Assembly (NCBI GenBank): GCA_002269645.1
Contig: NIVC01000010.1
Span: forward strand, 1,674,001 to 1,738,000
From: Macrostomum lignano
Taxonomy: Eukaryota
Length of the DNA stretch: 64,000 nucleotides
Direction: 5' to 3'
The translations under genes were made by a program, and so were the position numbers. How positions within the stretch are numbered: the stretch's first letter is position 1; each line of letters begins with the position of its first letter. The notes below the pieces were generated by a model, which saw nothing but the letters and a program-made list of their open reading frames with translations, ran no database searches and was not told where the DNA came from. Positions 18,938-64,000 of this stretch are shown here, one piece after another.

Positions 18938-18970
<33 letters not shown>

Positions 18971-19033: not shown

Positions 19034-19066
<33 letters not shown>

Positions 19067-33722: not shown

Positions 33723-34109
33723 CCAGCAAAGAAACGCTGGATCTGCACATTTACGGCCAAGTCAATTATACTCATTAGTGCCTATTCTACTCTGCCTACT
33801 GCCTACTGTCTATGCCTAATGGATTATAAAGACAATTGACAATATTTTTGGTCAGCTATTTTCAATAATATCAATCTGCTTATTGAAGAACTGATATTCA
33901 TTTGGACCTAATTGCTATTATAAATTAATTATCTTGTTTGACTAGTTCTCATTGAAATTTAGTCCTATCAACATATTATTATTAAATGTCAACAAATAAG
34001 ACCTTTGGCATTAGCATCAAAGAATTATATTATTAACTATTCAAAGACTTCTTGAGACCAATAAGGACCTATCAGTATCATCATCATCAATTGATTAATT
34101 GCTGCCAAA

Positions 34110-39090: not shown

Positions 39091-40468
39091 AACCGACTGT
39101 CATTAAGAAACAGATCTCGCGCGTAATTGCACCAATCACTACTTTGTGGCCACTTCATGGTGAATTCCTGGAACTAATCATGGTTAATCTACTAATAACT
39201 ATTGGATTTGATTTGATTGGATTGGATTTGATCCGTTGGACTAACTAGAACTATCATCTGATTATGATGGACTACTGGTAACTGGACTGACTAATTACTG
39301 TCTGATGGACTACTGGTAACTGGACTGACTAATTACTGCTTGATGGACTGACGGATAACTACCTAAGGGACTGATGGACTACTACACTTAACTACCGTGC
39401 AATAATTGTGCTGGAGACAGACTGTGAGCATTTTAACACTGATATTAATAAAGCCATGCTAAACACTATTAGATTCGCAACTTGATTCAAATACTGACTG
39501 GTTGTTTCCTAATAATGCAATTTTCGTATTTGGTAAATAGTAAATTTTGCGTGTTATTACACTGTTCCTATTGTTCAATTGCAGGGTGCTCGATTGCTTG
39601 AATTTTTTTTGCTTCGCGCATTTGTGAAATCGTTTTATCCGTCGAACTTTTAGTTGTTCATATTTTTTCAAAAAAAATACAGAAATATTATTTTGTTATT
39701 GCATTTTAATTTTCCCCAATATTGTGACAAAACATTAAAAAAATATCTGTTGCATATGCTTTCGCTATCGAATTGTTGTCGCGGAGGTGTACTGTAATTT
39801 TCGATCGTTCACGTCTTTCTGCAACTGTAATGGTCTGAAACTGTTATTTCGTTCGAAACATTCATCATTTCATTGTTCGTAATTTAGGCATAATTTAAGT
39901 CGTTGACAAGTACCGTAATAATTTGCTTCTCTTAAACATTTCATCTGTCAGTATTAGAATTTTGTCGTCTGTGCATTCGTTTCGGCGTTCTGTTGCATAC
40001 GTTCGAATTGATGTTCTCGTGACAGTTTCGGTTTGTTGTGCTATCATGCATAATCATCAGCTTTAATACATTTTTTGAAGTGGTTTAAAGTTTTTCCTGC
40101 TCTTTTTGCCGGCATTCTTGTTGTGCAAATCGATGTTCAGAATCAACGCTCGCGCCGTGTCCAATGTACCTCTGCTTTCCGTGCGGTCGTGCTGGTGGCT
40201 CTGTCAGTAAGATTATAACTGTATTAGTATTGCAAGCATGGCGACCTTGCGTCTCTAGGAATTTTTTTTCTTCCTTCAGGGTACACTCGGTATGCATGTC
40301 TCCTCAACTTTTAATGTAAAATTATCACTGTTTTTCTGTACCCACTTTCATACCGTACGAGTATTAGCGACAAAGCACATCGAAATTTTCAATGTTCTAC
40401 TGACGCAGATTTTTGAAGTAGTATGTATAGAGTTTTCTTAACGGTAACAATGAGGGCATTGTTTTTCT

Positions 40469-40478
40469 GGAGGGGGGG
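40469..40478 (+). promoter_or_regulatory. polypurine tract GGAGGGGGGG
   Basis: Three nucleotides upstream of the 3' LTR TG. Confidence 0.85.
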
Positions 40479-40481
40479 TAA

Positions 40482-40973
40482 TGTAAAGTATTTTTATGTA
40501 TCAATTAAATCTCCGCACTTTTTATGATGTGTCCGGCATTCTTGAATATTATTTAGTTAGTATTTATTCAGTAGTGAGTTTCTATTTCCGCGATTCTTAC
40601 TGTACGTACTTTACTACTATTGTTTTACTGTATGCTAATTCCTATCGTATTTCAAACGCGAATGCGCTGTGTTTTGGTGTTAGTTCTCCTGTGCGCCGTA
40701 GTAGTTGTAGTTGTAGGGTTGCATAGCCGTTCCAGAGTTCCAGGCGATCCAGTTTTAATTCAAAAATAGATATAGACATTATTTAGAAAATTCTTAATTA
40801 CCTTGACTATACATAGATTGTTCAGATACGAATACAAATATATAAATGAAATGAATTAAGGCGCATTGCATCCACAAGCCAAGAACGCATTCGGCATTCG
40901 TTCATTCATCTGTCATCACAACGAAAATAAGGCGATTCTTTGAATTCTTGGACTTCAAGAAACTTATTTTACA
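40482..40973 (+). repeat. 3' LTR (492 bp)
   Basis: TGTAAAG...TTTTACA, containing TATAAAT. Confidence 0.96.
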
Positions 40974-42258: not shown

Positions 42259-44558
42259 ATGCTCGTATTGCTGAGACGACATGGTTGGCTCTTACTGGTT
42301 TTTATCGGTAAAAGCCGCAAGTCTTAGTCATAGTTAGTGCAACAGAAAACTCATCTTACGAGTATTTAAACAAAAAAGAATTCTAAAAAGAGCCCAGTAG
42401 AATGCGCTTAGTTCGAATTTTCACCAGGTTGTTCTTCAACGGTTCGCATGCAGCAACTGCACCAGTCCTGTGAGAGTTGTTGATCGGCTTGACAAGCCAG
42501 GCCTCTCTGGATGGGACCTGACTTCACAGAATACTTCGATAACAATGCATCCAAGTATGAGCCAACTTGAACCGGGACAGCTCCAGACTTTGGGTCGCGA
42601 ATACACTAATCAGCTTGGGACCCGCGAGCATAAAACTTAAATTCAGTCGCCAAGTGACGATGGATCTTAAATACGCAATCGATATTATTCAGCACTTCCC
42701 AATTGCAAAGCCTGGATCCCAAGGTAAATTGGCTCAATCAAAAAATGTCAATAAGAATCTGCAGTTTGCTCAGCTAAACCAGCTGTCTCAACGAAGAGTA
42801 TCATAATAAAAAATAAAAAGATCGGTCGTTTGATGTCGGTTAGACAGTTGACGCTAAAATCAAGTGTTGATTGCATCGCTGATCAAAGCATTCTTTAACC
42901 TGTAAGCATGAAATTCCACTGTTTTGTTTTGAAGGTGACAAAAACCGGGTTCATAACAAGAATTTCATTTCGTTTTCAGTTGGCAAAAGGCATTGGAGTC
43001 CAGATTTCTGCCAACTGCTCACAGAATCTTCCAGTCGCTGTGGAGGCGGAGAGAACCGGGGGCTTTACAGTTTTGTTAGAAAAACTGGACTTCTTGTTTG
43101 GTACGTACGAGTACTTGTATTGGATGCTTACCACTGTAATGGAGCGCTTTTTTAACATAGGAGCTCGCATATATTTCTACATTGAAAAATCGCACAAACT
43201 ATTCTCTATCTTGACAAATCGCAGATTTAGATCCAGTTTGCCCCAGATACACGAAAGAAAGGCATTGGGAAATGCAGCTCTTTCTGTATAGCCCAACTCG
43301 TTTTCGCCGCTTCGGTCACATACACGTGTTCTTCTGCGAAACGCCAATTGCTTCCTCACCTGGCCATGACCTGATTGTTCAGCTGAAAATGCACGCCTCC
43401 AATGACTATCAGGAGCGATTCTGCTATGAAATCAGCTCACTGCTCCATCACCCGAAGCTCAGCTTCATCATTTCTGCACCTCAAAGAGAGAGGGAGACGA
43501 AGCTCAGCATCTGCGACCACGACATTCCTGGCCGACTGCGACTGCAGGACAGGCTCCGAGTGAGCGAAGGCGAAACGCTTACGGTCGATGTAACCTCGGC
43601 GTCGCCAGAAAATCCATCAACTGGTGCCGAAGGAGCCAACAGAAACGACTCGGAAGTAGCAAATGCCGAATTCCACGGCTTCCAATCCGAAGAGAGTATC
43701 GTTGGGTCAATCATCGTGGACCAAGGTGCATTTCACTGATGTCTCAAACTGCAGCTAAGAGTATGTATAAAAGTGTAAGAATATGACAGGCACAAATGAA
43801 TGTCAAAACTTTTCACACCCAATTGCATTCACACAGTTGAAGTCTGCTCGCGAATCGACAGCTCAAGTGAGCAGTGGCAGCTGAGCGCAGACGGTACAGA
43901 GCTGCTCACCACTGTGACAGTCGCTCCCGACAACACTCAGACTGACTGCAAACTGCAGCTGGATGCCTTCACTGCTGCTCGAATCGCGAACCGCACCAAA
44001 GTTGCAAGCACTGCTACTGAAATCTCCAAGGTGTCAAACATCAGCTGCTGGAAGCTGGAAGTGAAGCTGGACAAGTTCAGTACGGTGTGCGGACTCAAGC
44101 AGCTCGTGCTGACTGCGTCTCACTGGGACTCTCTGGCAGCGTCGGTCGAGCGCAGTCAGCGAGAGGTCTGCGGCTCGAACTCGCAGTTCAAATTCCGCGT
44201 TGAGGCCAGCCTGCAAGCGGTGGACAGCGGAATGGGTCTCGCGTATAGCGGAGTGAGGTCCGGCTTTAGGGCTCGGCTCTCCATCTCGAGCTGCGGTCAG
44301 AGCTCTGCTCAGAGTGAGCAGCTGGTTGAGTCTCCAGGTGGGCGCATCTTTTTGCTGACTGAGGCTTTAAAATTTGCACGTTTGTGCCAGGCTCAGTGAC
44401 CACCCCGTGTTTCGATTTCAGCAACCTCGGGCTCCGTGTCACCTACACTGATTTCTGTACTGGTCATTCTGATTCTGTGCAACGCTCTTGTTGCATTGTT
44501 TGTTTGTCGGACAAAGCTTTTCAGTGCTCTGAGGTCGCTTCGAGCTCCACAACCGTAG
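42259..44558 (+). pseudogene. CUB-family membrane receptor paralogue B, internally collapsed, frameshifted, with a nonsense codon
   Basis: Signal-peptide-like MLVLLRRHGWLLLVF. Exon-2 relic SNCTSPVRVV..GLSGWDLTS matches C exon 2 and has two frameshifts, then joins LISLGPASIKL..QHFP (matches C exon 8). Exon 42765-42901 has TAA at 42896-42898. Exons 42980-43100, 43225-43725, 43837-44337 and 44422-44558 (TM) are open. Confidence 0.75.
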
Positions 44559-44594
44559 TGATCTCCAAAACTGATTTGCGCACCTGCGCGTGGA

Positions 44595-44872
44595 GGTCAA
44601 TCACTCTAAGGTGGTCAATCACTCTCACGCGGTCAATCACTCTCACGCGGTCAATCACTCTCACGCGGTCAATCACTCTCACGCGGTCAATCACTCTCAC
44701 GCGGTCAATCACTCTCACGCGGTCAATCACTCTCACGCGGTCAATCACTCTCACGCGGTCAATCACTCTCACGCGGTCAATCACTCTCACGCGGTCAATC
44801 ACTCTCACGCGGTCAATCACTCTCACGCGGTCAATCACTCTCACGCGGTCAATCACTCTCACGCGGTCAATA
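44595..44872. repeat. 18-bp perfect minisatellite GCGGTCAATCACTCTCAC
   Basis: About 15 units, starting just after the gene B stop codon. Confidence 0.92.
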
Positions 44873-45171
44873 CAATTTAAAGACGGCACATTACTCGCAA
44901 TGGCCTTGATTACCAATATATACCGGAATATTTAGGACAAAAACGAACGTGATTTGATTTGATTAAAGTCGCATAAAAATACAAACATTACGACGCTTAT
45001 GGTTACCTTGTAATCTTGATAAAGATTCACCATTAAAAAATGTTTTTATGAAGCCTACTTGCTACTATAAGCAATATCTAAAGATTCGTTCTTTTTTCGT
45101 TAAAAATTCTCTTTCCGGTTAAGCGATGCTGCATATCTGAGACTTATCGACTCAACGATTAAAAGGAGATA

Positions 45172-45737
45172 AAAGTGCCAGATACAGAGGGTGTGCCAGA
45201 TACAGAGGGTGTGCCAGATACAGAGGGTGTGCCAGATACAGAGGTGTGCCAGATACAGAGAGTGTGCCAGATACAGAGGGTGTGCCAGATACAGAGCGGG
45301 TGCCAGATACAGAGCGAGTGCCAGATACAGAGGGTGTGCCAGATACAGAGGGTGTGCCAGATACAGAGGGTGTTCCAGATACAGAGAGTGTGCCAGATAC
45401 AGAGGGTGTGCCAGATACAGAGGGTGTGCCGGATACAGAGGGTGTGCCAGATACAGAGGGTGTGCCAGATACAGAGAGTGTGCCAGATACAGAGCGGGTG
45501 CCAAATACAGAGGGTATGCCAGATACAGAGGGTGTGCCAGATATAGAGGGTGTGCCAGATACAGAGCGGGTGCCAGATACAGAGCGTGTGCCAGATACAG
45601 AGGGTGTGCCAGATACAGAGAGTGTGCCAGATACAGAGCGGGTGCCAGATACAGAGCGTGTGCCAGATACAGAGGGTGTGCCAGATTTAGAGGGTGTGCC
45701 AGATACAGAGGGTGTGCCAGATACAGAGAGTGTGCCA
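45172..45737. repeat. 18-bp minisatellite GTGCCAGATACAGAGGGT
   Basis: About 31 variant units. Confidence 0.92.
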
Positions 45738-46485
45738 GGATTTTCCTGTTTATTTTTTCGAACGCCAAGATAATGACCTCCAGTTAGTGAACTTTCGAAC
45801 AATGGTGAATTGTTCAGGATGTTCTAGGATTGTTCTAAGATGCATACGAGCTATGTACGTGTGCAGTTTCTTGGCTTAACATTTCACTCTGTGTTTAAAA
45901 CTCAGTAGTGCCAGGATTCATGCACGACTTAAGAACGATTTACTAATCCGCAGTTGCTTCAGTGTAAACTAAAAAAGATCTCGACAAAGTTAGAACTTAG
46001 CTTAATGGTCTTTACAGGCTCTGTAACTCTTATCAATGTACATGCAATGATGTAAAAGCAGCAAAGATAACCGGGCGTGAATGCTGCGGGCCAGCGACCG
46101 CAAGACATCAATCTGGCTATTATATGCAAGTGTCAGTTTTTATCAGATTGATACTGAGATACATTGACTACAGTGATACATTTCGCAACACGCCCGTACA
46201 CTTAAATCAGAACGCATTAGACCAAGCATTGCTGAAATTCTACCTGACCTATAGATTCGCGAGATTCAACCCCTTTGCCTTTGGTTCAAAGATTTAATCA
46301 ATGCCAATTTTCTTGTGCAACTTTGTAAAGCCAATGCTGGATACCTGCGATGCAATCAGATTAAAAGTAAACAGAACGAGCTAAACACGCTGCCAATTCT
46401 CGCGCTGTATGAAATGCGCCTACGCAAACGAGTCCGCTCTGACGGAAAAATTTCGCTTCTGTTGGCATCGAAGCGCCATTCTTCC

Positions 46486-49400
46486 ATGGCCTTGTGTTTC
46501 ATGGCACTGTATTCGAAATATCCTATTGTTGTGCGGCTGCTGCTGCATGTACTACTACTGAGTCCAACCATCTCTGGTGAGTTGAATCGGTTCGAACTTG
46601 GGACTTCGACTGTATAATTTTAGCGATTTAAAATAGGTTTTAGCATTAATACTTTTTCTCACACAAACGTAAAATTGCGTTTGCAATTAAAAAATGTAGA
46701 TAAATTATCACTAGTAGGAACAAGATGTAAATGTTGTTCCTAAATGTAACAGTTAGGAACAAGATCGAAACTGTTGAGCTTAATTTATTTGAAGGCCCCA
46801 TTGACCTGTCAGTGAAATATTGAGACAATTCCAATTCCAATTTCAAACAATACTGAAAACTTCTGACTTTATGAAAACGCATAATCTGTTGTTTTGAATA
46901 TTATCATTTCATTTCAAAAATTGCCTGTTAAATAAAAATATACGAGGTAAAAGTGACCTTGCCAGTAAAATTGAAAGCATAAGTGGTCTTGTCATTAAAC
47001 TATTTCCTCTCAAAACCAAAGATCCACGAGTCAGACATGAAAAAAAATTACGAATGCCGTTCTATACAAAAAGCGATAGAAGCTGGCTTCGAGTACGGTT
47101 TCGAGTATGTACGTAAATTTGATTCAGTATGCAATTCTTTATACTCGTAATTAATGGCAATCCAACAGACTATGAAATAACATCAAAGTGTGCGCATAGT
47201 ACTTAACAATAGAAGCTTGTGTTTTAATTGCTTTTATGTTTCTAAAAGGAAACAAACTATATATCTAAGTATTGAGTATTTAGATGCGCCTAAAAATGTT
47301 TAACCTCAGAATGCTTCTCCATATTAAATTCAGCCTCTAACGAGAGGACGCCAGAAGAAACGAATGCTGCGCCATCTAATTCGGTTCGACGATCAACGCA
47401 GATGTTGCAGACAGGATCTGCTCATCAGATACCAACGAGTGCTAGCGTCCGAACTACGACTCGGCCGACTGCTCAAACAACAACTGCGATCTTGGTGACT
47501 CCGAACAACTGCACTAGGCCAACTCGTGTGGCCAACCAATTTGGAATTTCGGGCCTCTCCGGGTGGGACCTGACTTCTCACGCCGACTATTTCAATAATA
47601 GCGCCTCTGAGCACGAGCACAATTTGAACTGTCAGTGGATAATCGCCGGCCGGGACGGCCTCATCACTCTGATCCGCATTACGAATTTGATTCTGGAGTC
47701 GTCGCCAACCTGCGATTACGATGCCTTGATTTTCGACTTTGTAGATTTAAAAACAGACTATTCAAGCAGTCAGAATTTTTGCGGCTCAGTAGAAAGCAAA
47801 GTATTACTTTCCGCGTCTGGAATTAACATCACGTTCAAGACCGATTCGAGTGTGAACTACCGAGGTTTTCACCTGCAATGGGCGTACGTCAATGAGTCGC
47901 TTGCACTAGAGATAAGAAACACAACTCGTGAGTCCTCAATTAAATATTATTGGCATAGTCTGTGGCACAAAATTGTTATTAATGACTACAACCATCTCTT
48001 ATGAGTTCTATTCCCTAACGTAGTCACACATGTATGACCGTATATCGCATACATTGCTGGGCAAGAATTTTTGAGATCACATCCCCTTAGATAGAATAAT
48101 GGGAAAAACCTAATGTATTGAACCATCCGATTATATTTAAGATCTTGAGTTAGTATATAATCCCATTTTCCTTCTTTATCCCAAGTAGAGTAAGCCTCTC
48201 GATACAGGGTGGTCAAAAAAGGCCTTTCTTACAGCTTTGTTTGTCACAGCAGCAGGTTTTTGTCATTTCTATAATTACAAAATGCATTTAAATCAACAAA
48301 AAGACTTGCTTGGCTTGCTATCATACCTGCTCAAAATTAGACAATTTCGCTGTCTGGCTTTCACACCGCTCCCACCCGGGCCCTGCTAAATCAAAAGCAT
48401 CATGATATCGTATTCTATACAAGGGCCTGTAGCTTAATGGTAACCTTTCTCGACTCCTGTGCTCGATTCTCGAATCACTCGGAACAATCTGTGTCCTTGA
48501 GCAAGACACAAAATTTGATCTACATCGCTTCAGCTGGTTCACCCATCTCTAAACTGGGTACCAGCATTAGCTGAGGTAATTGAGAGTGTGCGTATGTGTG
48601 TGGCGACCCTACAGTCCTGGGTCTGTACAGGGGTAAATTTTATTTTACGCTCGGATTTATTGTTTACGAGCGTACTGGGGGGGGGGGGGCGTCACAAACC
48701 CAAAATATAATAACTCCGAAAACCAAAATAGCATTGCCCATCATAAACCCGAAAAATCACAGACCCGAAATATCATGACTCCGAATGAGTAAGGTCAATT
48801 TTAAAGGACTCAAAAGCTGCAGTATGTTATTATTTTAGCACGTAGATAGTTATCACATAGATAGATGGAGAGTCACACACAAACAAACCATTTTTAGTAT
48901 ACTGGCATGCATTTCAATAAATATAATCCACTGTACCATCCGCAGGCTACTCTCGATGCACCAAGCCGGAGGAGATGCGAGCAATAACCATCGCTGGTAT
49001 CTCTGCTCCGGGTGAAAGGCTGGTGTCGCACGAAGGCTTTTCCATGGAATACGCGGGGTCAGCTCGATATAAAAACAATCAAAACTGCCAATGGAATCTA
49101 ACAAGAAAGAGCCAATACATTATGTTATGGGTCAGGCTGGTTCATCTCGAGTATTTGGCAAGCACTGACGGTTCTCAGTTATGCAACTATGACAACTTGA
49201 CCTTGCACTTCACGGACGCCTCAACAGGCCAGCCAGTAAGAAGTACCTTGTGCGCCATGACGCGGGACCGGACATTCCTGGCCAATTCCAGCATCGAAGT
49301 GACGTTCCGAACAGACTCATCGGTCAGTTCGAGGGGATTCGCCATCGAATGGATGCACCTAAATGAGACGCAGGCTGACCTGTTCCGACAGTCCTGGGAA

Positions 49401-52400
49401 AGGTTTAGTAAGAAGAAATCCGGAATATTTTACTTTGAACGGTGTATGCGCTCGTATCAAATCGAAATAATTTTTTTCACAAAAGGGGTGGGTTTCACAA
49501 GCACGAAATTTCATTATCACCAAAAGTCACTTGCTTTCATAAACGTGAAAATTCACAGACGAAAAACTTCACAACCGCTAAATCACCTACTTTCATAAGC
49601 GCTAAATTTCATAAACGCAAAAATTTATAAAAGAAAACTTCACAAACGCGAAACTTCGCAACCGCTAAATTTTTTTCACTTAATTTCATGAGCGACAGTG
49701 TTTTTAGCGGTTGCGAAGTTTCGCGTTTGTGAAAGTAGGTGATTAAGCGGTTGTGAAATTTTACATTTGTGAAAGCAACCCCTTTAAAGACTTTAAAGAG
49801 AATAATCTGTAAAGCACCAATGCAGAAATAGGAAGATATGTAATCTTTCTAAAGTACATATGCTACAATTTAGCTTAGTCTTTAATTTCTTGTATCCATG
49901 GCTGCGTAGAATTTATGCACAACACAAACTTAAGTCCTCTTACTACCTGAGGTCGTAAATATCTGCAGCAAGAGCGCAAAATATCTTGATTTAACATTTA
50001 GTAAAATATTTCTGAATCAAAATTTTCTTAAAAAATCAGATAGTTACACGCGGCTGTACTGGTGTTCACATACTCGCACGCAGTTATATGTGTACCCGTA
50101 TTTATGTATCAGGTGCGCCAGTGCATTGAATAAATTCTTTATTGATGCAAAATTAATAGTTTCTGGGAGGGAGCGATTAGTTCAGCGATTGACGTGCCAA
50201 AATACACATGCAGGCTCGATTCTAAGTTTCGGCCACATGTGTTAAATTTTTCAATTGTCACAAAATTGCAAGCCTTATTAAACACCCATGTATATTTTCC
50301 AGCAAACACTACTCAATCAGGCTGCACGGTGCAGATGCCGCTGTCAAATCTTACTCTGAACTCAGCTGGACCATTTAGCGGTGGCCAGCTAATGTCCCAT
50401 GTGGAATACCTGACCATTGTCAACTCAAGCTACCAGCCGAACATGAATTGCAACTGGACTATTCCGGTGCCGGACAACTTCACTCTGATCCACTTTAGGA
50501 TTGTGTCCCTGGATCTAGAGACCAGCAGCGTTCAAAATTCGGAGTGCAGATTTGACAATGTTACATTTGTGTACAAGAATGTCATAACTGACCGATGGGC
50601 TTCCAAGGTAGCTTGCAAAAGTTTACACCTGTCGTACTTTACTAGCAAGAGCGACGTGGTTGTGAAGTTTGTAACAGATCGCTCCGTGTCCAGGCGTGGT
50701 TTCCACTTGAGATGGTATTTTGTACCACTGCATGATGCCTACGAGCTGCCAGGACTAGAAGACATGCAATGTAAGCTCAGGGGAACCAATAAGTATTGTT
50801 AATACCGATCTTGAAAAATTGTAAATGCGCCTACAACTCTTTCTAAAACCAATCGAATTTGCAGCATTCAACTGTCCGGAGTTCGCAGCTACCCTTCAGC
50901 TGAAAGCTCTCACACTCGAGTTAAACCAACCAAGTCTTAACTGCATGTGGCGGCTGACAGTCCAAGGGGGAAAGATATTGCGAATAAATGCAATTTTCAG
51001 GGATATGAATGATGATACGGAGATCTTTCTCAGTACCGGTTCACACGGTACGTTTCAAATTTACTACTTTTGAACATTACTGTCAATTATTACACGCAAT
51101 CGGCTGTTTCACTTTGGAGCATTTTACTAGTGCATTTTCATTGCGTGACAAAGACAATAGATACGCTCGTATACTCGTACATAGGTACCGCTTGGAAAAA
51201 ATAATCTATTTACATACAGAAGCAAACAGTTGACAGGATAATTTAAATACCTGTACCTTTATTAGTGCTAGCTAGGAGTGTTTCTTCTAAAAATAGCTTG
51301 ACAACCCAAATCTCTTCAATCCCAGGTGAAATATTGACTTCTGTTACGTCACGACTAAGACTTACTAAATCACGGGGATAAATACTCTCAAATGCCCGCT
51401 TTGAAAATGTGATGCGTATTCCTCGTTAAAATCACCCTGTTAGCAGCCAATCAAGGTATGTCAGAAGACATTTGTAGTTAAGTAGGAAGACGGAATTAAA
51501 TAATAGTATAATTTACTGAGCATCGTGGAAGTTTAACATTTATACCCGAATTATCTACTGCGGTTAGTAGCGCGCCAAAGTTTTTTCAGTAGCTAGTATA
51601 AATAATCCAAATGGGGAATTCGACGTTTTAGCAGTTTAGTACGATTTAAGGTAATTAATAATTTTTGCTACAAAAATATCCTTAGAAATAGTAGGAATTG
51701 ATCCTTATCTTATTCCTAGTTTAACCGTGAATATTCTCAGTTATACATTATAACTTACACATTAACAGTTTAACTAGTACAAAACCAGAATCGCCGATTC
51801 TACATGTAGATCCGCGGCCCTTTGATATCCATGTCGGCCGTGTTCCAGCCCTTGCTATACATTTCTAGCTATACAAAAGTTAAAATCAACATAGATTATA
51901 ATAAATTCTTTCTTCCGACGCGTTTCGGTCCAACAATGACCATCTTCAGGGTCTGGTGTATTTTTAACTCACACAACAACTTTATAAGTGAACAAATGTT
52001 AACTGTACAGTCCAAAGGGCATGTCATGGGCAGAATTTTCCAAAAAATGTTAAGCATAGATTGCAAGTACATTGTTCAGACTAGTGCCTTTACTTAGAAT
52101 ACCTTGAGCAAATGGCCCGCACCACTATGGGAGAGCTGAATATTCAGATTAGGTTTTTGGTCTTTAATGTACATGGATTCAAGTTGAGCCTAAAATCAGT
52201 TCTACACCGATCAATAATTTTAAACTGCTGAGTTTGCTCAATTTCGCAACAACTGTTGCAACAGAGCAGGTGGTCTTGGATAGCGACCTTTTCAATCAAT
52301 GCTCTCTGACTCTGGTGTACAGGTGCCTTTTAGTTTTACCTATATAGGTAATGTTCTGGTCAACAGAACAAGAGAACTTATACACAACACCTGCCGCCAG

Positions 52401-55400
52401 AGCAAGAGGAACATGGGATTTCAGTCTACTAACGTATTGGCCAACCTTAGTACACTGAAATCCTTAGTAGACTGAAATCCTATCCTATCCTATCTATGTT
52501 GATTTTAACTTTTGTATTTCTCTGCCTGCTAAAGCGTGCTACCTTACCTCAATTTCTAGCTATAGTTTCGGATTTTTTTCGATCGTTTGCTTCTGTCATT
52601 ATTTATTGTTGAAAAACTTCATAATTAAACGAAAAGCTTCTGAAAAAAGCTATAAATATGGCTTTCATGAAGAAAATGTCTAATGCAGATTCGTTATCAA
52701 TTAATTCCAACACAAAAGGCTGAAATTCCACACTCCTACAAAAGCTTTACTATATAATGTTTTCTTTTTCAGGGCCGTGTTGTTTATCATCCACAAAGAT
52801 ACTGTCCGCATCCGGCAGTGGACTGAGAGGTGGCATTGAAAAGCATTGCCTCTGCAAAAATAGCACTAACGGTTTCGATTTTGTTGCATACCCGGGTTCG
52901 GTAACGATTCGACTTCGCAACAGAATTTCCTTGCCTAACAGAAAGATTACTATATTCTGCACGACGCTACCGGGTAAAGTCTAGAGTTTTTTCTGCCTAG
53001 CTCTAAGAAATAACTTTTATACACGTCCAATCAACCAAAAAAGCAATTAGGCAACAAGAAATAGAAGCGCCAATCAATTTATTCGTGTATAACCATTCTA
53101 TAGATTGTTCAACCTCTTGGCAATCTACTTAATTTCAGAGCCAGTGCACACGAACTGCTCATCAGTACGGAGAATAAACAAATATCAAAGTAAGATTTCC
53201 GATCGTTTAACCCGGCTCAAGAGGATCAATTGTGAATGGACTATTCGACCACTGGACGAAAATCATGCAGTTAAAGTAAAGGTGATTCAGCTCGAATCGC
53301 GTGGGTACGTACACCTACCATTTATAGAGCTTAGTGTCCTTTCTGATTCTAGCTGCATTGCCGATAGCACAGTGCTGAGCACTAGAGTAATATAGTATTG
53401 TAACTAAATTAAATTGTAAAGTTGACTTTGAGACATGCAAACTTTGCTTACATTGCAGCCGACTCTACCATCTTGGTTTACGAAATCGTTGGCGCCGTGC
53501 CACTGCAATGTTCTCCTCGCCACTGCTTCCACCGCTACCCGGAAGCGCTGACTGCTCGTGCATGATGCAAATCTCTACCGCTAAAGGTTTTTACCTGAAT
53601 ACCATTAGCAACTGGACAAAGGCGATTCATTCAGATGCGCCAGTAAATAGTGACAGTAGAGGAACCAGCAACATTGAGTTCAGAAGATGCTGTGGACGTG
53701 ATCAAAGATATTTTACACCCGCGCATTCGATACTGCACCCCGATTTTCTGGACTTGAGTAACGAAGTGCTAAGTTTAGGACCTGTTAGCATAAAGCTCAA
53801 TATGAGTCGTCAACCTCTGCATGAAGTCATCTACGAAATTGATGTTCAGCACTTTCCAGTCGCATTGCCCGGATCTAGCAGACGTAAGCTGAGCTATACA
53901 AAATTTTTTTAACATAACATTTTTTCCAAATAATTTCATAATTGTGCATTATGAACTACAAAAAATCTAGCTTACTCTTTTATCATCAGTCTGAAATTAT
54001 AATTTTGATACTTAGAACCAATACTAGGCCTAGAAAGCTGCAAAGTACTCATTTTAATTAGTCCTATTCTGCGATGCAAAGCTTTACATGTATATAGTGT
54101 TTCTGGCTTGTTTGCCTTCATCAGTCGGCCATTATAGCGGCGCGCCGCCCTTCCCACCGCTCTTAGTTAGCACAGAGTGGACAGAGTGAGCATGCTGCGA
54201 CATTTTTGGACTATGGGAGATTTTACGATTCAAATCTTTACTCGTCTACTTTTCTCAGTAGTCTGTCTTTCTTTCGAATCTTTCACAATGTACGAGCGTA
54301 TGAAAACATTTCTGCCAATTAAAAACTGTTGTTTGGCAAAAAGTGTACCAAGTACCATCTAAAAAAAAGTCCTTTCGAGAGGGAATTAGAAGTTTTTTAA
54401 GGAAGCTCTTGATAATTAAATTTATTAGAGGCCAACTATGCATTTCAGTTTGTTCTGGCCCGCCAAGCATCTCAAAGAATCATGATATAGTTGATGAACG
54501 CAACGGTAGCCGCTTAGTTTCGTTAAAGCAGTTCACTCTGGCATCTAAAACTGATTGCATCAGCAGTGCTCAGTTGACTTCATCTCAGTCATTGCAAACT
54601 GTAAGTTGCAAAATTTCATGCTGATAAGGTACTTAGCTAGTATGCAATGCAGCAGTATTTATAGTGATATAAACCAAACGACACTTATATTTACAGCAAG
54701 AAGACGGACATGGAATTAGACTGTCAGTGAATTGCACCGATAACTCTGGGCATATAAATGTCGTCAAAAATGACCTGACAGTCACTAGAATGCAATGCGA
54801 CAACGGCTCATTCTTGTTTAGCTTGTTAAAACGTGTCCCAGTCACACTGGAAGCTGTGGGCACAGGTGGTTTTACTGCCGTGTTGGAACTTGTTTCCGTG
54901 GCCCTGGGTAAGAAAATTTGCCGTTTTTCTATTGTACGGCGTACGTCAATTAAATAAAACAGTTCACTTTGAGAAACCAAACATATGATGCAGTAAAAAG
55001 TAGTGGGTATCGAATAAAATACTAGCAAAGACACAGACAGAACACGCTTTGGTTGTTCATTAAAATAAAAAGTATTATTAGAATTTGCAATTTAGTACTA
55101 GAAGTTTTTCACACATGCGTATCATCTTTATTAAATACAACTTCCTATTCATGATTAATTTTTCCGATCCTATTCCAATTTAGCTCACTGTCCAATCAAA
55201 GTTCCAACTGTCTTTTTTAGAAGTGGAACACTTCTGCAGCAGATACACTCCTACTAGTGACCCATGGACAGCTAACCTACTTTTGTACACCAGACTGCCG
55301 CTCGGCTTTGCTGGGCTTCACCTACGTTTCTGTAGGATTAATATGACTACGAAACCTGGACACGACCTCATTGTGCGGCTGCAGATGCCTTTCAGCAACG

Positions 55401-56601
55401 ACTACCATGAGACATTCTGCTCGGAAGTCGGCTTGCTTCATTACAAACCAAAGCTCAGCTTTATCCTCTCCGCCCCACACACAAGCAATCAGATGAAGCT
55501 GAGTCTGTGCAATCAAGACTTACCTGGCGGGCTCCAACCGCAGGATAAAATTCGAGTTAGCGAAGGCGAGTCCCTAACTATTGACGTAACCATGGCAACG
55601 ATGTCAAATTTGCTTACGACCTTTGACCACATGCCTGAACCGGGAGATGATGATTTTGGAAGTTACGCACAGGGAAAAACTATCGACGCATTCCTTACCG
55701 CTAATCAAGGTACGCATTCTATTTTTAAATTAAACTAAAGTTCTGAAATTACATACATAATAAATACATTCGCAATTTACCCTACCTGACGGTAAAACAG
55801 TTGAGGTCTGCTCACGAATAGACAACTCAATTGAGCAGTGGCAGCTGAGCGCAGACGGTACACAGCTGCTCACCACTGTCACAGTCGCGCCTGACAACAC
55901 TCAGACTGACTGTAAAATACAGCTGGACGCCTTCACTGCTGCTAGAATCATAAATAACACCAAACCCACCAGTTCTGTGCGTGAAATTTTGAAATTATCG
56001 AAGGAAGATTGCTGGAAGCTGGAAGTGAAACTGGACAAGTTCAGTACGGTTTGCGGACTCAAGCAGCTCGTGCTGACTGCGTCTCACTGGGACTCTCTGG
56101 CAGCGTCGGTCGAGCACAGTCAGCGAGAGGTCTGCGGCTCGGACTCGCAGTTCGAATTCCGCGTCGAGGCCAGCCAGCAGGCGGCGGACAGCGGTATGAG
56201 TCTCGCGTACAGCGGAGTGAGGTCCGGCTTTAGGGCTTGGCTCTCCATCTCGGGCTGCGGTCAGAGCTCTGCTCAGAGTGAGCAGCTGGTTGAGTCTCCA
56301 GGTGAGCACGATTTGTGCATGATAAATAGATGATTTATGACGCCGCAAGATTGTGTATGAGCGCATACTCGTAGTCTTGTTCCACAAATTTTATCCTGTG
56401 TCAATTTCAGCAAACTCCAGCGTCGTCTCACCTGCACTGACCGCCTTGTTGGTAATTCTTGCGCTGTGCAATCTACTTGTTGTATTGTATATTTTTCGGG
56501 CCAAGATAATTCGGTTTGCTGCTAGCAGGAGCCAGCGATCGCGACAGCTGATTTACCAAACTGGCACCGATGGAGTGAATCTCATCCACGAAGATGACTA
56601 A
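46486..56601 (+). CDS. multi-CUB-domain type-I transmembrane protein C, ~1377 aa
   Basis: Exons 46486-46576, 47334-47927, 48946-49407, 50303-50770, 50865-51047, 52773-52973, 53139-53304, 53459-53883, 54449-54600, 54697-54907, 55221-55709, 55801-56301, 56411-56601 total 4134 nt, are phase-consistent and have no stops. Signal peptide present. Three canonical CUB exons (NxNCxWxI..C.YD.L..FC..F.TDSSV..RGF), then divergent Cys-containing CUB-like modules, a TM helix (ALTALLVILALCNLLVVLYIF) and a short tail. Exon 8 and the start ATG are the least certain parts. Confidence 0.85.
48427..48628 (+). mobile_element. tRNA-derived SINE copy 3 (gene C intron 2)
   Basis: GTAGCTTAATGGTAA head relic, GTGTCCTTGAGCAAGACAC, GGGTACCAGCATTAGCTGAGGTAATTGAG..GTGGCGACC, shared with copies 1 and 2. 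Confidence 0.65.
49482..49785. mobile_element. ~300-bp MITE with ~20-bp TIRs and palindromic subterminal repeats (gene C intron 3)
   Basis: AAAGGGGTGGGTTTCACAA ... TTGTGAAAGCAACCCCTTT, with internal inverted copies of AACTTCACAACCGCTAAA / ATCACCTACTTTCA. Confidence 0.7.
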
Positions 56602-58499
56602 AATTAGCTGCGTTTGGCACAACTGAATTCGAAACAGTTTTGTAACAGTAGAAATGCCTTGCGATAAATTTTATGTTAAAAACGTTCTTGGCACTTCTGA
56701 TGAAGACAGTAAAAAAGCATGTTATGATCTGCTTAGCAAGAATTCATTAAATAATTTTTCTGCAGAAACAGCAATATTGATCATTTTTACTATTTACTTT
56801 TTCATTTTGGATTGAATTGGCTCGCTAAAAATCATTAGATGTGCAATTGCTTTAGTTTATTATGCCTTCAGTGAGGTTTGCTTATTTGATGTGTAAGTAG
56901 ACTATGCTACACTCGCTGTATTGCGATGTTACGTAATCATGCCATGTGCCATTTTATTCTATTGCAGTGTATTAAAACATTGAATGTGAGATATTAATTC
57001 AAATTAACTACTTGCTTCGTCCTGAATCAAATTGAAGTTAAATGAAAATGAGATATTTTAATGTTTTTTGACCTATGCGCAACAGTATCAACAATAGTCT
57101 GTTGTTTGTTTGTTTTTTTAGATTTACCAACTACTTGATTGCTAGAAACTGCCAGTAAATTCCCCAATATTAAAATTGGATTGATTTCACCCCATCAAGA
57201 TGGCCTATTTTCAAATATCTGTGTCACAATAGCCGAACGGTTTTGAGAATTCTGTAACACTATACGCACGTAATCTATAAAATTAACTATTTAGCTCGAA
57301 TTTACATGTGCTATTTTTACTTCTCTTGCTCAGCTGAACTGCGATTTTTTTATAATCCTACGCGAATTTAGAGTGAATACTCTTATGCTCCAATCAGTCT
57401 AATGAATATCCTTGTGTAATCATGCATACTGATCTTATTTGAACCTGGAATTCGTATTTTTGCTTATGTGATTCGTTTGAATCAAAATCAAAGTTGCTAT
57501 TACAATAAACAACATGAAACATATTTGACTTCAAGGTAAAAAGTTCTTTAATTGGTGACTAGGTAAGAATTTCGCCTAATCCCCTATTGTAGTTGGAGTG
57601 ACATCTTTGTCTAAAATCCTCAGAAAAATGTTTCTGTTCTATTGGTAGAAAGTAACTCCTCATCTGTGTTCTCAGGTACTTTGAATCCCAAGTCTTTTAC
57701 CAATTGTTCACTGGTTGCGGAATTGTGTAGAAATTTTTATAAACTTTGAGAAAAGGTGTAGATAGCGTTTTGCTATATAGACATTTCTATATTCACAATT
57801 TACCACAAGAGCGATAGGCAGCGCTGTATTAATGTCAAGATTATTCATAGTTCGTATTATTCCCCACAATATATATTGAATGAGGAATGGGGAATGGAGT
57901 GGGGGCAACACGATACGATTCGTATCACAAATAAGGTTGTCTATGCGCAACATTACAAATAATGATTGAATATCTAACAGCTGGCAATAAAAACCTGACA
58001 ACTGCTTCGGCACTAGAAAGCCATGAAGTTTTTTGCACCATATCATTTAGGTATAGTGGAAATAAAAAAATAGCAACGACTTCTTCTGTTAGTTTGTCCA
58101 TATTACGAGCAGCCTCATTCTAAGCGTGGCCTCATGAGGTAAAAGTGCCCCATAGGTCCATAAGCGTCCGGGTTCGCGGACATATAAAATGAAACAAGCG
58201 GGAAAAAACATATTCTTACTTATATAGATTAAAGTGCATCAAGTCGTACAGCGCAGCTGTACTACCATTTACAGTTTTAGTAGTTGCCAGCTCAGCCGCG
58301 TTGATTAGTTTGGTTCAGCTGCGATTTTTTTGTTTGTTCAACGCTTTGAACTCATTGTTCAAAGTTACTAAAACACTTTCATGAGACAATTTTGCAAATG
58401 TTTTTTACATAAATGGTTAATTTGTGATAAATAGGAGCCCATTTTGAGCCCTGAGAGGAAACTCCCGACGCGAATTTTACCCTCCCTCTCTCTATCTTT

Positions 58500-59025
58500 C
58501 ACGGCCTGGTCGAACTATACTCAGCAACAGTCAAAAGTTCCACCCTCCAAGCGAGATGAATTTTTTTCACTATTGCGAGTGACGCAACTTTACTATTCAC
58601 GCGCAAAGCTTATTGCCACTTGGGGGTGGTTTGGGTCTGCTTAATTGTCCAAGATAACAACGCGCCGCCACACCGAGCCGATGCTGTTAGTCAACTGAAA
58701 GAACAGCTTCCCCAGGACTTTCTGCGGCCGCCTCATCCTGGGGATGCACCGCAGTGTCGCCGCACTTCTGCGTGCGAGGGGATCCGACACGCGTTATTAA
58801 GCATGGCGATTCTAACAGCATATTGCATAAATATAAATTGTCAAGAATTTGTCCGACTGACGTTTATTATCGATTCAATCAATTTTCCCTTCCTCGCGGC
58901 TGCTTAGTTGCGTAACTGGAGGGTTGAATTGTGTGTGAGAAGTTGTCGCAATAAGTGAGAAAATGTTCATCTCGCTTGAAGGGTGGAACTTTTGACTGTT
59001 GCTGAGGATAACTACGAGCTAGATG
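58500..59025. repeat. ~80-bp inverted repeat pair around a ~370-bp spacer (MITE/foldback-like)
   Basis: CTCAGCAACAGTCAAAAGTTCCACCC..AAGCGAGATGAA at ~58512-58562 is inverted at ~58962-59010. Confidence 0.7.
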
Positions 59026-60069
59026 GACTCTCCCAACAGTCGGGCACGAGACTGCTTCCGTGCGCTGGCCGAACTGACTTAGATGACTGAGCTTAAGGTC
59101 ACCTCTCTAGTATTGATCAGTCCGTCCCTAATCCCCTCAGTTTCAGCGCCCACAGTGGCAGTCTCCCACGGAAGAAACAGAGAATACTCACTAATTGTTT
59201 CGTCTGATACTCCGGCAATACTCTGGGCAGTGCGAGGCGGAGCGGGTGGGCTACCTTTAATAACGTGAATTTGAAACTCTAGTTGGCGGTGTCGTCGAAA
59301 CAAAACTTAAAAGTGCGCTCTCCTTCCCCCACCGCCAACTCTCAGACAACTTTAAGGGCCAAAGATTGGGGTTAAAAAATTCCTTCTGACTGCCGATTGG
59401 CCAATACATACTAGCAAATCAAATTTGGGCACGGAGGCTAGAAGTAGTTGGGGGAGCGCGGGGCGGGCAGTCTAGCCAATCAGAGCTGGATGTGCGATAA
59501 CTGTGGCGGACAGAATGGGGTGGGTTATGCGAACGCGGCGAGTGCAGTTCCCGGCCCACCCGACCGACAGCCAGGGGTTTCTTATTCGTACAAATGCACC
59601 GGGGCACAACATATCGAAAATTTTAACTTTGTTTAAAACGACGCACTGGATTAACGCAAAAACCTTAGTTACAGCCATTTATATCGTCCTTGTCTGTTTA
59701 TTTCTTCGAGCCAGTCATCTAAAAACTTTCAGACAACTTTTGACGACCTTTGACGACTGATACATGAAAGTGTAATGCACAGAAGGGTCTATATTTTCTC
59801 TGCGGCAGACCCTGTTGCATGACTATCACCGACTAATATCTCTAGGCTCTCCATTTCACACGTGATTGAAACCACCCTATCTACTGGAAAATCTTAGTCG
59901 CTAGATATATTTAAATCGTTTCTACAGAAAATTTATAAAATTAATAAACACACGATTTCACGTGTTCGTATTTTATTACAGCACAATACAGTCAGCCTAT
60001 AAGGTTTCAGACCACATATATAAGAATACGCGCTTTTAAACAAGCAGCAATTCAACGGTGTCATTAGCC

Positions 60070-63000
60070 ATGGACAGGAGGATTTTCTCTGCTGCTGTGC
60101 TACTGCAAATCGTGACTGCAACCTATTTCGGTAGGAGTTATGCTATAATAGTTGTAGTGACATTTACGAGTATATCGATTCATGAAACTGCCTTTGATTG
60201 CCTTCTTTTAATCTGTAATTATAATAAAGTTGACGCAACAGCATAGCACTAGATTAGCACTAGATTCGCAACAGATTAGCACTGCCTGTTATTCCCTTCT
60301 CCTCCGACACCTCTTGTATGCTACAGCTTCAATGCAGATTAAAAAATCAATTCTATGTTTCTTTCTATTCTATTCTATGTCTATGAGGACTATGTTTCGC
60401 GCAATTTATTTTTCTGAATTTACAAAAAACAAACCAAAATTTACCTTCAGGTGGTGCGTTTGGGCAAAAGCAATGCACGAGCCTCAAGCATATGTCGAAT
60501 CTCCGTCTTACTAATGTTGGAGTCTTTCCAGGCGGAAGTTTGGTATCCCACAATGGATTCTCTGACGGCACTGGCAGCTATGAACACAATATGACGTGTC
60601 GCTGGACATTACAACTACCAAATACTATGACACTAATTCACGTCAATATATTAAGACTAGACCTGAAAGTTCGACACCATCATTTTTTTGCCGATTGCCC
60701 CTACGATCGTCTCACAGTAGAATTTAAAAACGCCATGACTCTTTACTGGGAAACAAAAGTGGCATGTGCAAGGTTGCACCTACCCTATTTTACTAGCGCA
60801 AGTGATGTTTATATATCGTTTTATACGGACAGCTCAATAGCTAAACGAGGCCTTCACTTGGTTTGGTACTTTGTTCCGGAATCGGTCGCCTACCGACTGC
60901 CATTGCCTGAGGATTGGTCTGGCAAGTAAACCGCGGATCACCTGTTTTACGCATCTATACTTAGCAACATTGCAAATTTGCCACCCCTTGCGCTAGTAAA
61001 TGGCCGGTCAACGCGGGTCAAAACCAAAAATAAAACTTAACATTATTTTTTTGAAAAACCTAAATTGAGGGTAACAGATTGCTCAAATCTAATTTACAAC
61101 GGGCTTTAACCAATTAAAAATTGATTTGAGCAATCTTGGACCCACAGAGCTAGCTACTGGAGGTAATGTGAATGGGCCCTAAGCAACCTCCTATTGAGAG
61201 TTCAAGAGCCTGGGACTTTATGTAGCGTACAATGGAGCTGGAGAGTCCGCCACAAAATGTCATGCAACTACGCCAAGTCATTGTAGAGATGCCTGGCAGA
61301 GTCTTCAGTGTAGAAATATTTCCCACTACCAGTATTTATTATCCCTGCAAGATTTACCGGTACTCTTCATAATCCTGATTTCGGTGACAAACGTTTTCGT
61401 AAGTAAAATAGTGTAGTACAGCCAAACAGCAAGAATTTTATAGTCACGATATTAACAGTGATTGTAACTTTTTGCTTTAGTTTTGAGGGTGCTTTTCTAC
61501 TCAAAAGATGAGTTTTTGCATAGGTAGATACACTTGCGTTTGGAAGTTTTCCGCCGGTTATCCTGGTTCAATTTATTACCTGTAGTGGATAACATAATTC
61601 CCAAAGCTTTTTGTACGAACCCCGCTCAAGCGAAGCTTTTTGTGTATTCTGATAAAATGTTACAAATGATTCTTTGGTGTATATAGTCGAATCAGTGTCC
61701 CCAGCGAGGGTTGCAATTAGACTAAACCGCATTCCTGACCTCGGTAGCTACTATACGAAATACGATTTCTGTGATGTGACATTTTCCTCACGTACTGTTT
61801 TAGCACCTGTGAATGATTGTCCCGAGTTTTTTCAAAACAATGGAACACTGATAGTGACCACCGATCGTTCCAACTACGACTGTACCTGGCGCTGGGAGCT
61901 CGGTGCCGAGCATGCCATGAAGATGTTTATAGAATACGTGGACTTTGGCCCCGCAGACAACTTGAGATCACACGGTACACGCTAATTCTGATTTATGATT
62001 GTTAAATAAAATTTACACGCTTGCAAATTCTAAAGCAGATGACAAATAACCAGTACTCATAAAATTGTATGCAGTTCTCGAATGCTTCTTGCAGAAAACT
62101 GCTGCAATGCACACACCGGAAGGCTTACTGTGCAGTTTACAAATAGAATTGGTCAAGGTGAAGAATTGTGCTTCTGCGGCAACAGCACAGTAAATGAAAC
62201 CATTGAAGCCTACGTCTGGATCACGGTACACTTTTATATGATCGAGACATATCAGGGCAGAGGGACTCGTGTGAATTTCCAGCGACTGAGATGTGAGTTC
62301 CTTCTAATTTTTTTACATAGTTTTAAATAGAAGCTGTACAACTCTATTTGGATCAGAAATCCATATTGGATAAATAGATTTCTAGAGACTACGGTCCTAC
62401 GTTCGCATACAGTAATTTTGCCGGACGTTGGATTTGGGTACCAAATTCTTTGTTGAGAAAAGACGTTCTTAGTTTTTTCGAATAACTTGCAATATTTCAC
62501 CTTAGCTTCAGAATCGAAAGTCGAGCAAGTTACGAGCTACTTAGCTTGGATATATTTGTGAATGAACTTGGACAAAAACATACTTTGTTAAAAAATTGCT
62601 TCATTTTTAACCCGTACCTTACGCTCAGAGATACTGTCAACGTATTGCAAAAGAACCCAATTGCAAAATTACCAATCTCGCCATAACATTTATTATTGCA
62701 ATCGGAATTTTTTGCAACAAAACTTTTTAGTACAAAAGAATTCTAACTGCTCGCAGCCTCAACTATTAGATAGATACCACATCAAGCTTTCGGATACACT
62801 GACTAGAACTGGCATCGGTTCGTGCATCTGGTCGTTCCGACCAATAGACAATGATCATTTGATAATACTTACCATCAACCGCCTCATTATGGAATCATTA
62901 AGCCGGTATAAAAATTCGTGAGTATTTAATATATCACTTATACGCTCGCATTTACATGTACACTTGTACAAGCTTGTAATTATATGTTTTATTAGAACCA

Positions 63001-64000
63001 TGGGCAACTCCAAAATACGCTCGTAGGACACTACAAAATAGACGTATTTCACCAGAATTGCACCATAATTGCTGGTGTTCGGTAGCATTTCAGCTTGATA
63101 AATTTGTGAGTTTAAATAACGAAACAAAAAATTCTGAGTACAATTTGGAGAAAAAAATTCTAGCTTCATTTGGAACTTCGAGGTCCTTATAATTTCAGAA
63201 AGCTTCTCATTTTGCTAATGCGTTTGCTGCGAAAACCGGTCACTAGGGAGATTTGGACGATTTGTGAAATTAGTCACTTATTTTAGATCAACGAACTGTA
63301 TGCTTATATTAATAAGTATTAAATGGTGGCTGAATACTGGAAAAACATTTTAGCCAAAGTACCAGGTACTGTACAGTTCTGTGACTTGTACAGTAAATTG
63401 TAAACAGGTAATACACTGCCTACTATATTAGCAAGTACAGATGTACATAATTTATCGCAACCAGTGCAACCGCAGTAATAAAAAAATCAATAACAATATA
63501 GCAAATTCTACCCCATTTTTCCATGACCTGCTGTCTTTTGTCATACAGATAAAAAAGAGAGGTTAAATTGCGTCTGAAAGAAACGTCTGAGCCTCAATTG
63601 CTGCACTTTCTGTGAACTTTTGTGGCTACTATTTGCTGCAAGTTGTAAAGTTGTTTGCTTCAATAAGTTAGCTCGTACTAAGCAATTAAAATCCACTTTG
63701 TGTATTCCGCTGCACAATCGAAAAATTTTAGGAGACTCGTCTGTCCATGCGAAATGAAGGTGCAAGGTAGACAGTTAAACCCATCGATAATGGATCAACG
63801 GACTGCAAACCCTTACAGGAATGAATCACCGAGGGTGAGCAGGTCTTACATGAGGACCAAAGTTTGTTGCAACATTCCTAACAAACGTCAATTCATGTTT
63901 TCTGGGCTCGTCGAAATCAATATTACTTTTGATGAAAACAAGGTTCTCAGCTACGATTTGGACATTCAGAATGTTCCACATGCTGGCCCTGGATCGGAAA
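60070..64000 (+). CDS. multi-CUB membrane protein paralogue D, 5' part (runs off the window)
   Basis: Signal exon 60070-60130 (MDRRIFSAAVLLQIVTATYF). CUB exon 60451-60921 is orthologous to C exon 4. Then 61804-61974, 62095-62292, 62731-62917 and ~63732-64000 match C exons 5-8 (e.g. VCCN..VEINITF..YDLDIQNVP..PGS vs RCCG..VSIKLNM..YEIDVQHFP..PGS). A possible small exon at ~63031-63107 is unresolved. Confidence 0.8.

Follow-up and report, generated by a model that had tools for sequence, protein, structure and literature searches.

Two neighbouring genes for CUB-array membrane glycoproteins in Macrostomum lignano and the probable concerted evolution of their membrane-proximal exon

In this study, we analysed a stretch of 64,000 nucleotides (nt) of the Macrostomum lignano genome (positions 1,674,001 to 1,738,000 of contig NIVC01000010.1, assembly Mlig_3_7, GCA_002269645.1), which is called the window here and whose own numbering is used below, with (+) and (-) for the two strands. 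Two intact neighbouring genes, C and D, were found at this locus, with three decayed relics, A, B and F, around them. C and D encode two transcribed, constrained and lineage-restricted type-I membrane glycoproteins that differ in the length of their CUB and CUB-like arrays. The original prediction, made from the letters of the window, had described B, C and D as three tandem copies of one architecture and had read them as a candidate recognition system; the common architecture was confirmed for C and D, whereas B proved to be a pseudogene decayed by frameshifts. The Mlig_3_7 gene set was assembled from RNA-seq data with StringTie/TACO (PMC5730564), which implies that its annotated multi-exon models, C and D included, are transcribed. 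The genes are already deposited as hypothetical proteins. No entry for them was present in the supplements of PMC5730564 and no paper dealing with Mlig009843 was found in the literature, where M. lignano and the CUB domain were mentioned together only in passing in papers on bioadhesion. What is new here is a corrected model of C that includes its signal exon, a module map, an inventory of the relics, the lineage restriction of the family and the concerted evolution of exon 12.

Copy C (46486-56601, +) consists of 13 exons, all joined by GT-AG introns, with an uninterrupted frame of 1377 amino acids (aa). The spliced product is GenBank PAA94477.1 (Mlig009843.g1, P0011) apart from exon 1, as the database model begins at an internal methionine. 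The missing signal exon (46486-46576), which is present in the proteins of the homeologues (P0003 and P0012), provides the ATG and a signal peptide (MALCFMALYSKYPIVVRLLLHVLLLSPTIS) and ends in phase 1 with CTG, followed by the donor GTGAGT. It is followed by a linker of 57 residues rich in serine, threonine and proline (44% S+T+P), which shares exon 2 (47334-47927) with the first canonical CUB domain (Pfam CUB, E=2.6e-10); CUB2 occupies exon 3 (48946-49407; E=3e-8, in agreement with P0011) and CUB3 exon 4 (50303-50770; E=8e-12). The three stretches matching Pfam PF00431 sum to 111 bits, and each of the three exons carries a whole CUB in phase 1-1, which bears out the earlier statements that C has three canonical CUB exons and that these are symmetric. 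The fixed run of divergent modules described earlier is present in both C and D and can now be stated more exactly as five modules, M4 to M8, from exons 5-12 of C. M4, which looks like a degenerate CUB, is encoded by exons 5 (50865-51047) and 6 (52773-52973), and M5, which has a CUB-like first half and a CEWTI motif, by exons 7 (53139-53304) and 8 (53459-53883), with boundaries taken from P0002 and P0011. Exons 9 (54449-54600) and 10 (54697-54907) code for M6, a predicted small beta jelly roll of uncertain family, exon 11 (55221-55709; 43% identical to B) for M7, which has a four-cysteine spacing like that of a CUB, and exon 12 (55801-56301) for the membrane-proximal M8, which is near-identical in all copies. 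Acceptor site, hydropathy and motif place the transmembrane (TM) helix, a 34-aa tail with the sequence DGVNLI and the stop codon in exon 13 (56411-56601). All modules of C are flanked by phase-1 introns, exons 2-6, 11 and 12 being of phase 1-1, and the splits inside modules are in phase 1 (exons 5/6), phase 2 (7/8) and phase 0 (9/10).

Copy D starts at 60070 (+) and reaches window-equivalent position 67530, about 3.5 kb past the window end, with six exons inside the window. Its 3' part was read from an overlapping piece of the same contig (L002; NIVC01000010.1, 1724070-1751530), which is identical to window positions 50070-64000 and adds 13.5 kb beyond the window end; the next gene 3' of D is an ankyrin-repeat gene unrelated to the CUB family. 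D corresponds to the annotated 975-aa protein P0015, in which a signal peptide and a single CUB precede the five modules found in C, a TM helix and a tail. Exon 1 (60070-60130), an exact match to P0015, carries the signal peptide (MDRRIFSAAVLLQIVTATYF), and exon 2 (60451-60921) the sole canonical CUB (Pfam CUB, 34.4 bits against a cut-off of 21.4). Exons 3 (61804-61974) and 4 (62095-62292) encode M4, again matching P0015 exactly and aligning with C, and exon 5 (62731-62917) together with the start of exon 6 (63732 onward, to the window end at 64000) encodes M5, the remainder of the gene lying in L002. The CUB of D is 46% identical to CUB3 of C and 29-33% identical to CUB1 and CUB2, which agrees with the earlier view that D keeps only the third CUB. 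The mucin-like linker of C is absent in D. Intron 2 of D is a GC-AG intron in the annotated transcript (exon end G followed by the donor GCAAGT, at 60922), whereas the matching intron of C uses GT (50771). An older UniProt model of D, A0A1I8G3H3 (P0001), begins at an out-of-frame ATG inside exon 6 (63854-64000); its first approximately 23 residues, which are encoded with 100% identity at 63932-64000, are a prediction artefact, and the frame of P0015 is correct.

Both proteins possess a single hydrophobic 19-mer with a Kyte-Doolittle (KD) value >1.8, which in each case is the TM helix, and their N-glycosylation sequons number 25 in C and 14 in D. The tails, 34 aa long in C and 42 aa in D, are only about 25% identical, in line with the earlier remark that the tails differ. 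Near the C terminus of both, however, an acidic dileucine motif of the form [DE]xxxL[LI] is found at aligned positions (DGVNLI in C and DHLNLL in D), and its D, N and L are among the few invariant columns of the tail alignment. A motif scan detected no YxxPhi motif in either tail; D has no tail tyrosine and the only one in C lies outside a YxxPhi context. As [DE]xxxL[LI] is the only tail feature common to C and D, adaptor-mediated endocytosis or lysosomal sorting is suggested. On the ectodomain side, the acidic Glu/Asp/Asp positions that form a Ca2+-dependent binding site in CUBs of the cubilin, C1r/C1s/MASP and PCPE type can be read off the sequence of the three CUBs of C (LILES..CDYD..KTDSS, HLEY..CNYD..RTDSS and LDLE..CRFD..VTDRS). 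The solved structures closest to the canonical CUBs are those of PCPE-1, cubilin and neuropilin, with E values of 6e-12 to 6e-4.

The five post-CUB modules gave no Pfam match above chance up to E=10 and only chance-level matches in a sequence-profile search of the PDB. An exhaustive HMMER search, in which a profile of C and D with 870 positions was run against 1.84 billion cluster representatives, returned two matches, a C-type protein and a D-type fragment, both from M. lignano. We took the family size from this search, as other homologue look-ups each missed the C-type or the D-type proteins. Judged by these comparisons, the family appears to be known so far only from M. lignano. A genome-wide count had been proposed with the original prediction, and the large family that a receptor cluster might comprise was not found: there are C-type and D-type clusters alone and two intact genes. 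When the modules were compared by hhalign with the window's own CUBs, M4 aligned over 87 collinear columns (P=0.0017) and the first half of M5 over 24 columns (P=0.0035), while the comparison was not significant for M6-M8; each of M4-M7 contains four cysteines with CUB-like spacing. AlphaFold2, run on shallow alignments, gave a mean predicted local distance difference test score (pLDDT) of 37.8 for exons 5-13 and of 35.7 for exons 9-12, and a beta-sandwich was predicted only for M4 (pLDDT 60-69), for M6 (40-65) and for the first half of M5. In a Foldseek search with the model of exons 5-13 (pLDDT 38), from which the canonical CUBs are excluded, nearly all matches were multi-CUB proteins, among them enteropeptidase, MASP-2, neuropilins, cubilin, PCPE-1, C1r/C1s and NETO2 (rank 28), with probabilities of 0.98-1.0 and low TM-scores; because of the low pLDDT of the query models such lists are only suggestive. 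At least the first two post-CUB modules look CUB-like; overall, M4 and M5 are probably degenerate CUBs, and M6 is predicted to be a small jelly roll.

Window positions 41105-63224 have a collinear homeologous counterpart (L001, NIVC01001549.1) of 92-97% identity, in which B, satellite, C and D follow in the same order. Together with the three C-type proteins in the database, this fits the description of M. lignano as carrying three subgenome copies (PMC10733133). Between C and its homeologue, 13 of 13 exons are free of indels, and the synonymous divergence (dS) of 0.044 and non-synonymous divergence (dN) of 0.0146 give a dN/dS ratio (omega) of 0.33. Exons 1-5 of D likewise show no indels, with an omega of 0.32. 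As substitution counts per exon are small, the selection figure to be used is the gene-wide omega of 0.33 for C and 0.32 for D. The introns of the C homeologues differ by 2.5% and the coding sequences (CDS) by 2.1%. Omega, the lack of indels and the coding divergence indicate that C and D are constrained, though less than the average gene.

Judged by their divergence, C and D are ancient paralogues and not the product of a recent expansion. Between them, CUB3 and exons 5 and 7 have reached saturation in dS, exon 11 has a dS of 2.3 between C and B, and protein identity in these diverged exons (CUB3, 5, 7 and 11) is 19-46%. Exon 12 is entirely different in this respect: at the protein level C and D are about 92% identical, C is 88% identical in nucleotides to B or A, and dS is 0.18 for C-D and 0.32 (5' part) and 0.095 (3' part) for C-B. 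Within a few bases of both exon-12 splice sites, identity falls to 42-68%, and the flanking introns, at 42-50%, are unalignable. The exon is also a mosaic. A 70-nt island (nt 141-212 of the exon) exists in a B/A type that differs to saturation from the type common to C, D and F, and over nt 213-471 there are 14 differences between C and its own homeologue but only 8 between that homeologue and the paralogue D. The C homeologues diverge by 4.0% in exon 12, whereas the two introns flanking it differ by 1.0%, and at 15 of the 20 differing sites, a cluster at nt 319-388 included, the homeologue carries the state of D. Purifying selection alone was rejected as an explanation: it cannot hold synonymous sites so alike (dS of 0.095-0.32 next to saturated neighbours) and does not fit 4% divergence in the exon against 1% in the introns. 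The whole window gave 0 matches to Rfam, so an embedded known RNA family is not the cause of the nucleotide conservation. From the low dS and the reticulate site patterns we infer that exon-limited interlocus gene conversion, which the original prediction had also invoked, explains exon 12 together with purifying selection. The constancy of M8 may reflect contact with a common partner or a need for this module in folding or delivery. Exon 12 is G+C-rich, and every copy has several open frames on the two strands, with for example a 130-aa antisense open reading frame (ORF); the ORFs on the opposite strand (55995-56387 (-), 44037-44366 (-) and 9153-9482 (+)) are probably an effect of composition.

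A, B and F are decayed relics, and pseudogenes had indeed been part of the earlier description. Relic B (42452-44558, +) has collapsed its canonical CUBs, as had been described: about 33 codons of CUB1 (42452-42561), frameshifted, are fused directly to the final approximately 50 codons of exon 8 (42594-42743). Equivalents of exons 9-13 follow, namely, both shortened, an exon 9-like stretch (42761-42892) and an exon 10-like stretch (42956-43102) from which 30 codons are deleted, and then, all open, exon 11-like (43227-43727) and exon 12-like (43837-44337) stretches and a TM segment with a shortened tail (44409-44558). Compared with its own homeologue, B has frameshifting indels of 1, 10 and 1 nt at 42562, 42665 and 42940 in its 5' remnant, and its exons 11-13 lack a third-position bias. 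The idea of B as a functional short isoform was rejected on these indels, the absent codon-position bias and the lack of any B-type protein among the annotated proteins. Relic A, the fragment mentioned in the original prediction, does exist; it lies well away from B, C and D, outside the part of the window for which the family had been described, as inverted exons 11-13 only (8997-10367, -), and is 95% identical to B. In exon 12, A and B differ at four sites, one synonymous and three non-synonymous. Fragment F, an isolated and inverted partial exon 12, is situated about 1.6 kb downstream of D (L002 19077-19424, window-equivalent 69146-69493, -); it is of D type, with 13 of 348 nt different from D, and its surroundings have no similarity to the CUB family. 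Between B and C, satellite arrays with 18-nt-based units and repetitive ORFs (44590-45800) are found, which are also present at the homeologous locus.

The rest of the window is rich in repeats and fragments. An apparently intact Ty3/gypsy-type long terminal repeat (LTR) retrotransposon (30343-40847) separates relic A from relic B. Its gag ORF (34110-35339) contains a zinc knuckle, and its pol ORF (35368-39090; 1240 aa) covers protease, reverse transcriptase, RNase H and integrase; the 367-bp direct repeats at its flanks, at 99.7% identity, point to a recent insertion. Further satellite or low-complexity arrays lie at 12660-15600 and 18500-22600; they include 12-nt 'DRQT' repeats and an almost perfect 34-nt array (21398-21914), and the block at 14-16 kb is strongly C/T-skewed with a GC skew of -0.58. 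Upstream of the cluster, an ORF of exon size (4172-5302, -), in which a poly-Gln tract accompanies ASH and RhoGAP domains of OCRL-like type, is probably part of an inositol-5-phosphatase (OCRL/INPP5B-like) gene, and a nearby ORF (7278-8042, -) had no Pfam match. A SAP-domain ORF adjoining relic A (10787-11395, +) and a short ORF with an XPG-I-like match (17805-18170, -) may be gene fragments or derived from transposons.

Taken together, we favour the idea that C and D are lineage-specific, CUB-array ligand-binding surface receptors which are internalised through their conserved dileucine signal, and we give this statement as a whole an even chance; the endocytic step alone, proposed from a short sequence motif, we rate much lower. 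According to this model, the ectodomain would be a string of beta-sandwich modules, with three canonical CUBs in C and one in D ahead of the same five modules. The proteins would bind ligands at the cell surface, in C possibly through the distal CUBs that keep the acidic positions of the Ca2+ site, and the acidic dileucine in the tails would lead to adaptor-mediated endocytosis or lysosomal sorting, so that C and D could act as self-anchored scavenger or uptake receptors. M8 would be held constant by purifying selection and exon-limited conversion, and the number of CUB cassettes would vary as symmetric phase-1 exons are gained or lost. Several observations speak against this model. The first acidic Ca2+-ligand position is a lysine in the CUB of D. 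Being short, the dileucine motif might have arisen by chance, or it might direct basolateral sorting. The structure prediction and Foldseek comparison that had been proposed for the post-CUB exons suggested a CUB-like nature for M4 and M5, but the low-confidence model of M6-M8 matched generic cupin jelly rolls and not CUBs, and M7 and M8 had a pLDDT <40 with no fold predicted. Lastly, the coding divergence between homeologues is about twice the genome-wide CDS divergence of 1.1% (PMC10733133), and the constraint is weaker than that on a typical housekeeping receptor.

An immune, allorecognition or gamete-recognition function, as proposed originally, would make C and D self/non-self, immune or gamete receptors whose distal CUB arrays track variable ligands, with the relics as conversion donors. 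Tandem paralogues with unequal cassette number, three relics and active gene conversion would suit such a system, as would the lack of relatives outside M. lignano, the homeologue divergence of about twice the genome mean (PMC10733133) and the fast evolution reported for reproduction-related genes in Macrostomum (PMC7336406, PMC8662610). However, just two genes are intact and no further member occurs among the predicted proteins, the B-C-D layout is the same at the homeologous locus, so that the suspected copy-number variation is not seen there, and omega is about 0.33 without indels between homeologues. Conversion, moreover, makes the constant membrane-proximal exon uniform and does not touch the distal modules, and the C/D split, with its saturated dS, is ancient. 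A recognition function therefore gained nothing from the tests of copy number, omega, indels or conversion, and we consider it unlikely. M. lignano is also a solitary animal, and we know of no allorecognition in it. Rather improbable, too, is a 'variable head / constant stalk' pair in which the distal CUBs would follow species-specific ligands, these being mating-partner or gamete surface molecules or microbes, and M8 would be kept identical by gene conversion from the scattered pseudo-exon donors A, B and F; if true, the CUB fold, in place of Ig or LRR, would underlie such recognition.

The CUB-only ectodomain, single TM helix and short tail would also be in keeping with an auxiliary subunit that, like NETO1/2, SOL-1 or LEV-10, escorts or gates an ion channel or multi-pass receptor, with M8 and the TM helix as docking surface. 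The strong conservation of M8 suits a fixed partner and NETO2 is among the Foldseek matches, but Pfam finds no LDLa domain, C and D diverge even in their TM segments, and there is no sequence link to NETO, SOL-1 or LEV-10 beyond generic CUB similarity. Those proteins are conserved across Bilateria, whereas the C/D family has no detectable relative, and we doubt that C and D have such a role. The S/T/P-rich N-terminal linker and the 25 sequons of C might instead point to an adhesive or structural glycoprotein, a heavily glycosylated CUB rod with a mucin tip, located in epidermis, gut or an adhesive organ, which would attach to matrix or mucus and neither signal nor import cargo. CUB domains are reportedly mentioned in two papers on bioadhesion in marine animals, one on the pedal disc of an anemone and one on sea-star footprints (PMC6626399, PMC9382459). 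D, however, has no mucin-like linker and the conserved sorting motif of the tails would be left unexplained, which makes this role quite improbable in our view. Automatic UniProt naming of the homeologue proteins, finally, would make C and D cubilin orthologues. The UniRef name is 'Cubilin', and the structure of cubilin CUB5-8 is among both the sequence and the fold matches, but multi-CUB proteins from other animals share 20-25% identity with them, over the CUB part alone, C and D have one to three canonical CUBs as opposed to 27, and each has its own TM helix and tail. The label was rejected on domain content (Pfam: three CUBs or one, no EGF repeats, and a strong TM helix), and orthology to cubilin is extremely unlikely. 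More generally, by domain content and the profile searches, C and D are not 1:1 orthologues of cubilin, CDCP1 or any conserved gene, the case named in the original prediction as the one that would overturn it.

If the uptake-receptor model is true, C and D add a self-anchored, CUB-only receptor architecture with about 800 post-CUB residues that have no detectable relatives among 15 billion predicted proteins, and their domain content corrects the database name 'Cubilin'. Independently of function, the most reusable result is the pattern of exon 12, with 90-96% nucleotide identity among paralogues that are otherwise saturated and sharp edges at the splice sites. In a neopolyploid genome, it would be a clean case from nature of concerted evolution confined to one exon, and it would mark M8 as the functionally critical part. 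The biological importance is modest on present evidence; M. lignano is amenable to RNA interference, in situ hybridization and transgenesis.

C and D resemble several known systems without being identical to any of them. CDCP1 is likewise an N-glycosylated type-I protein with an ectodomain of divergent CUB-like beta-sandwiches, one TM helix and a short tail. It differs, however, in being a vertebrate gene that signals through tail tyrosines bound by Src kinases, whereas the tail of D has no tyrosine and that of C a single one outside a YxxPhi context, and no similarity to it was seen in the PDB sequence and profile searches, the exhaustive HMMER search or the Foldseek lists. Cubilin has arrays of CUBs of the Ca2+-binding type and captures ligands for endocytosis, which is the role proposed here for C and D; it is, however, a peripheral protein, has 8 EGF and 27 CUB domains and depends on amnionless both for its anchorage and for endocytosis. 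NETO1/2 and the Caenorhabditis elegans proteins SOL-1 and LEV-10 share the single-pass, CUB-dominated plan with a short tail, but NETO and LEV-10 carry LDLa domains, which C and D lack, and all of them occur throughout Bilateria, in contrast to a family without detectable relative. Neuropilins and LRP3/10/12 are CUB-bearing single-pass receptors as well, and the a1a2 part of neuropilin is among the top fold and sequence matches. Only the CUB part of the neuropilin plan (two CUB, two FA58C and one MAM domain) is matched in C and D, in which FA58C, MAM and LDLa domains are absent and whose post-CUB modules appear unique to their family. The tails of LRP3/10/12, for their part, carry acidic-cluster/dileucine sorting signals.

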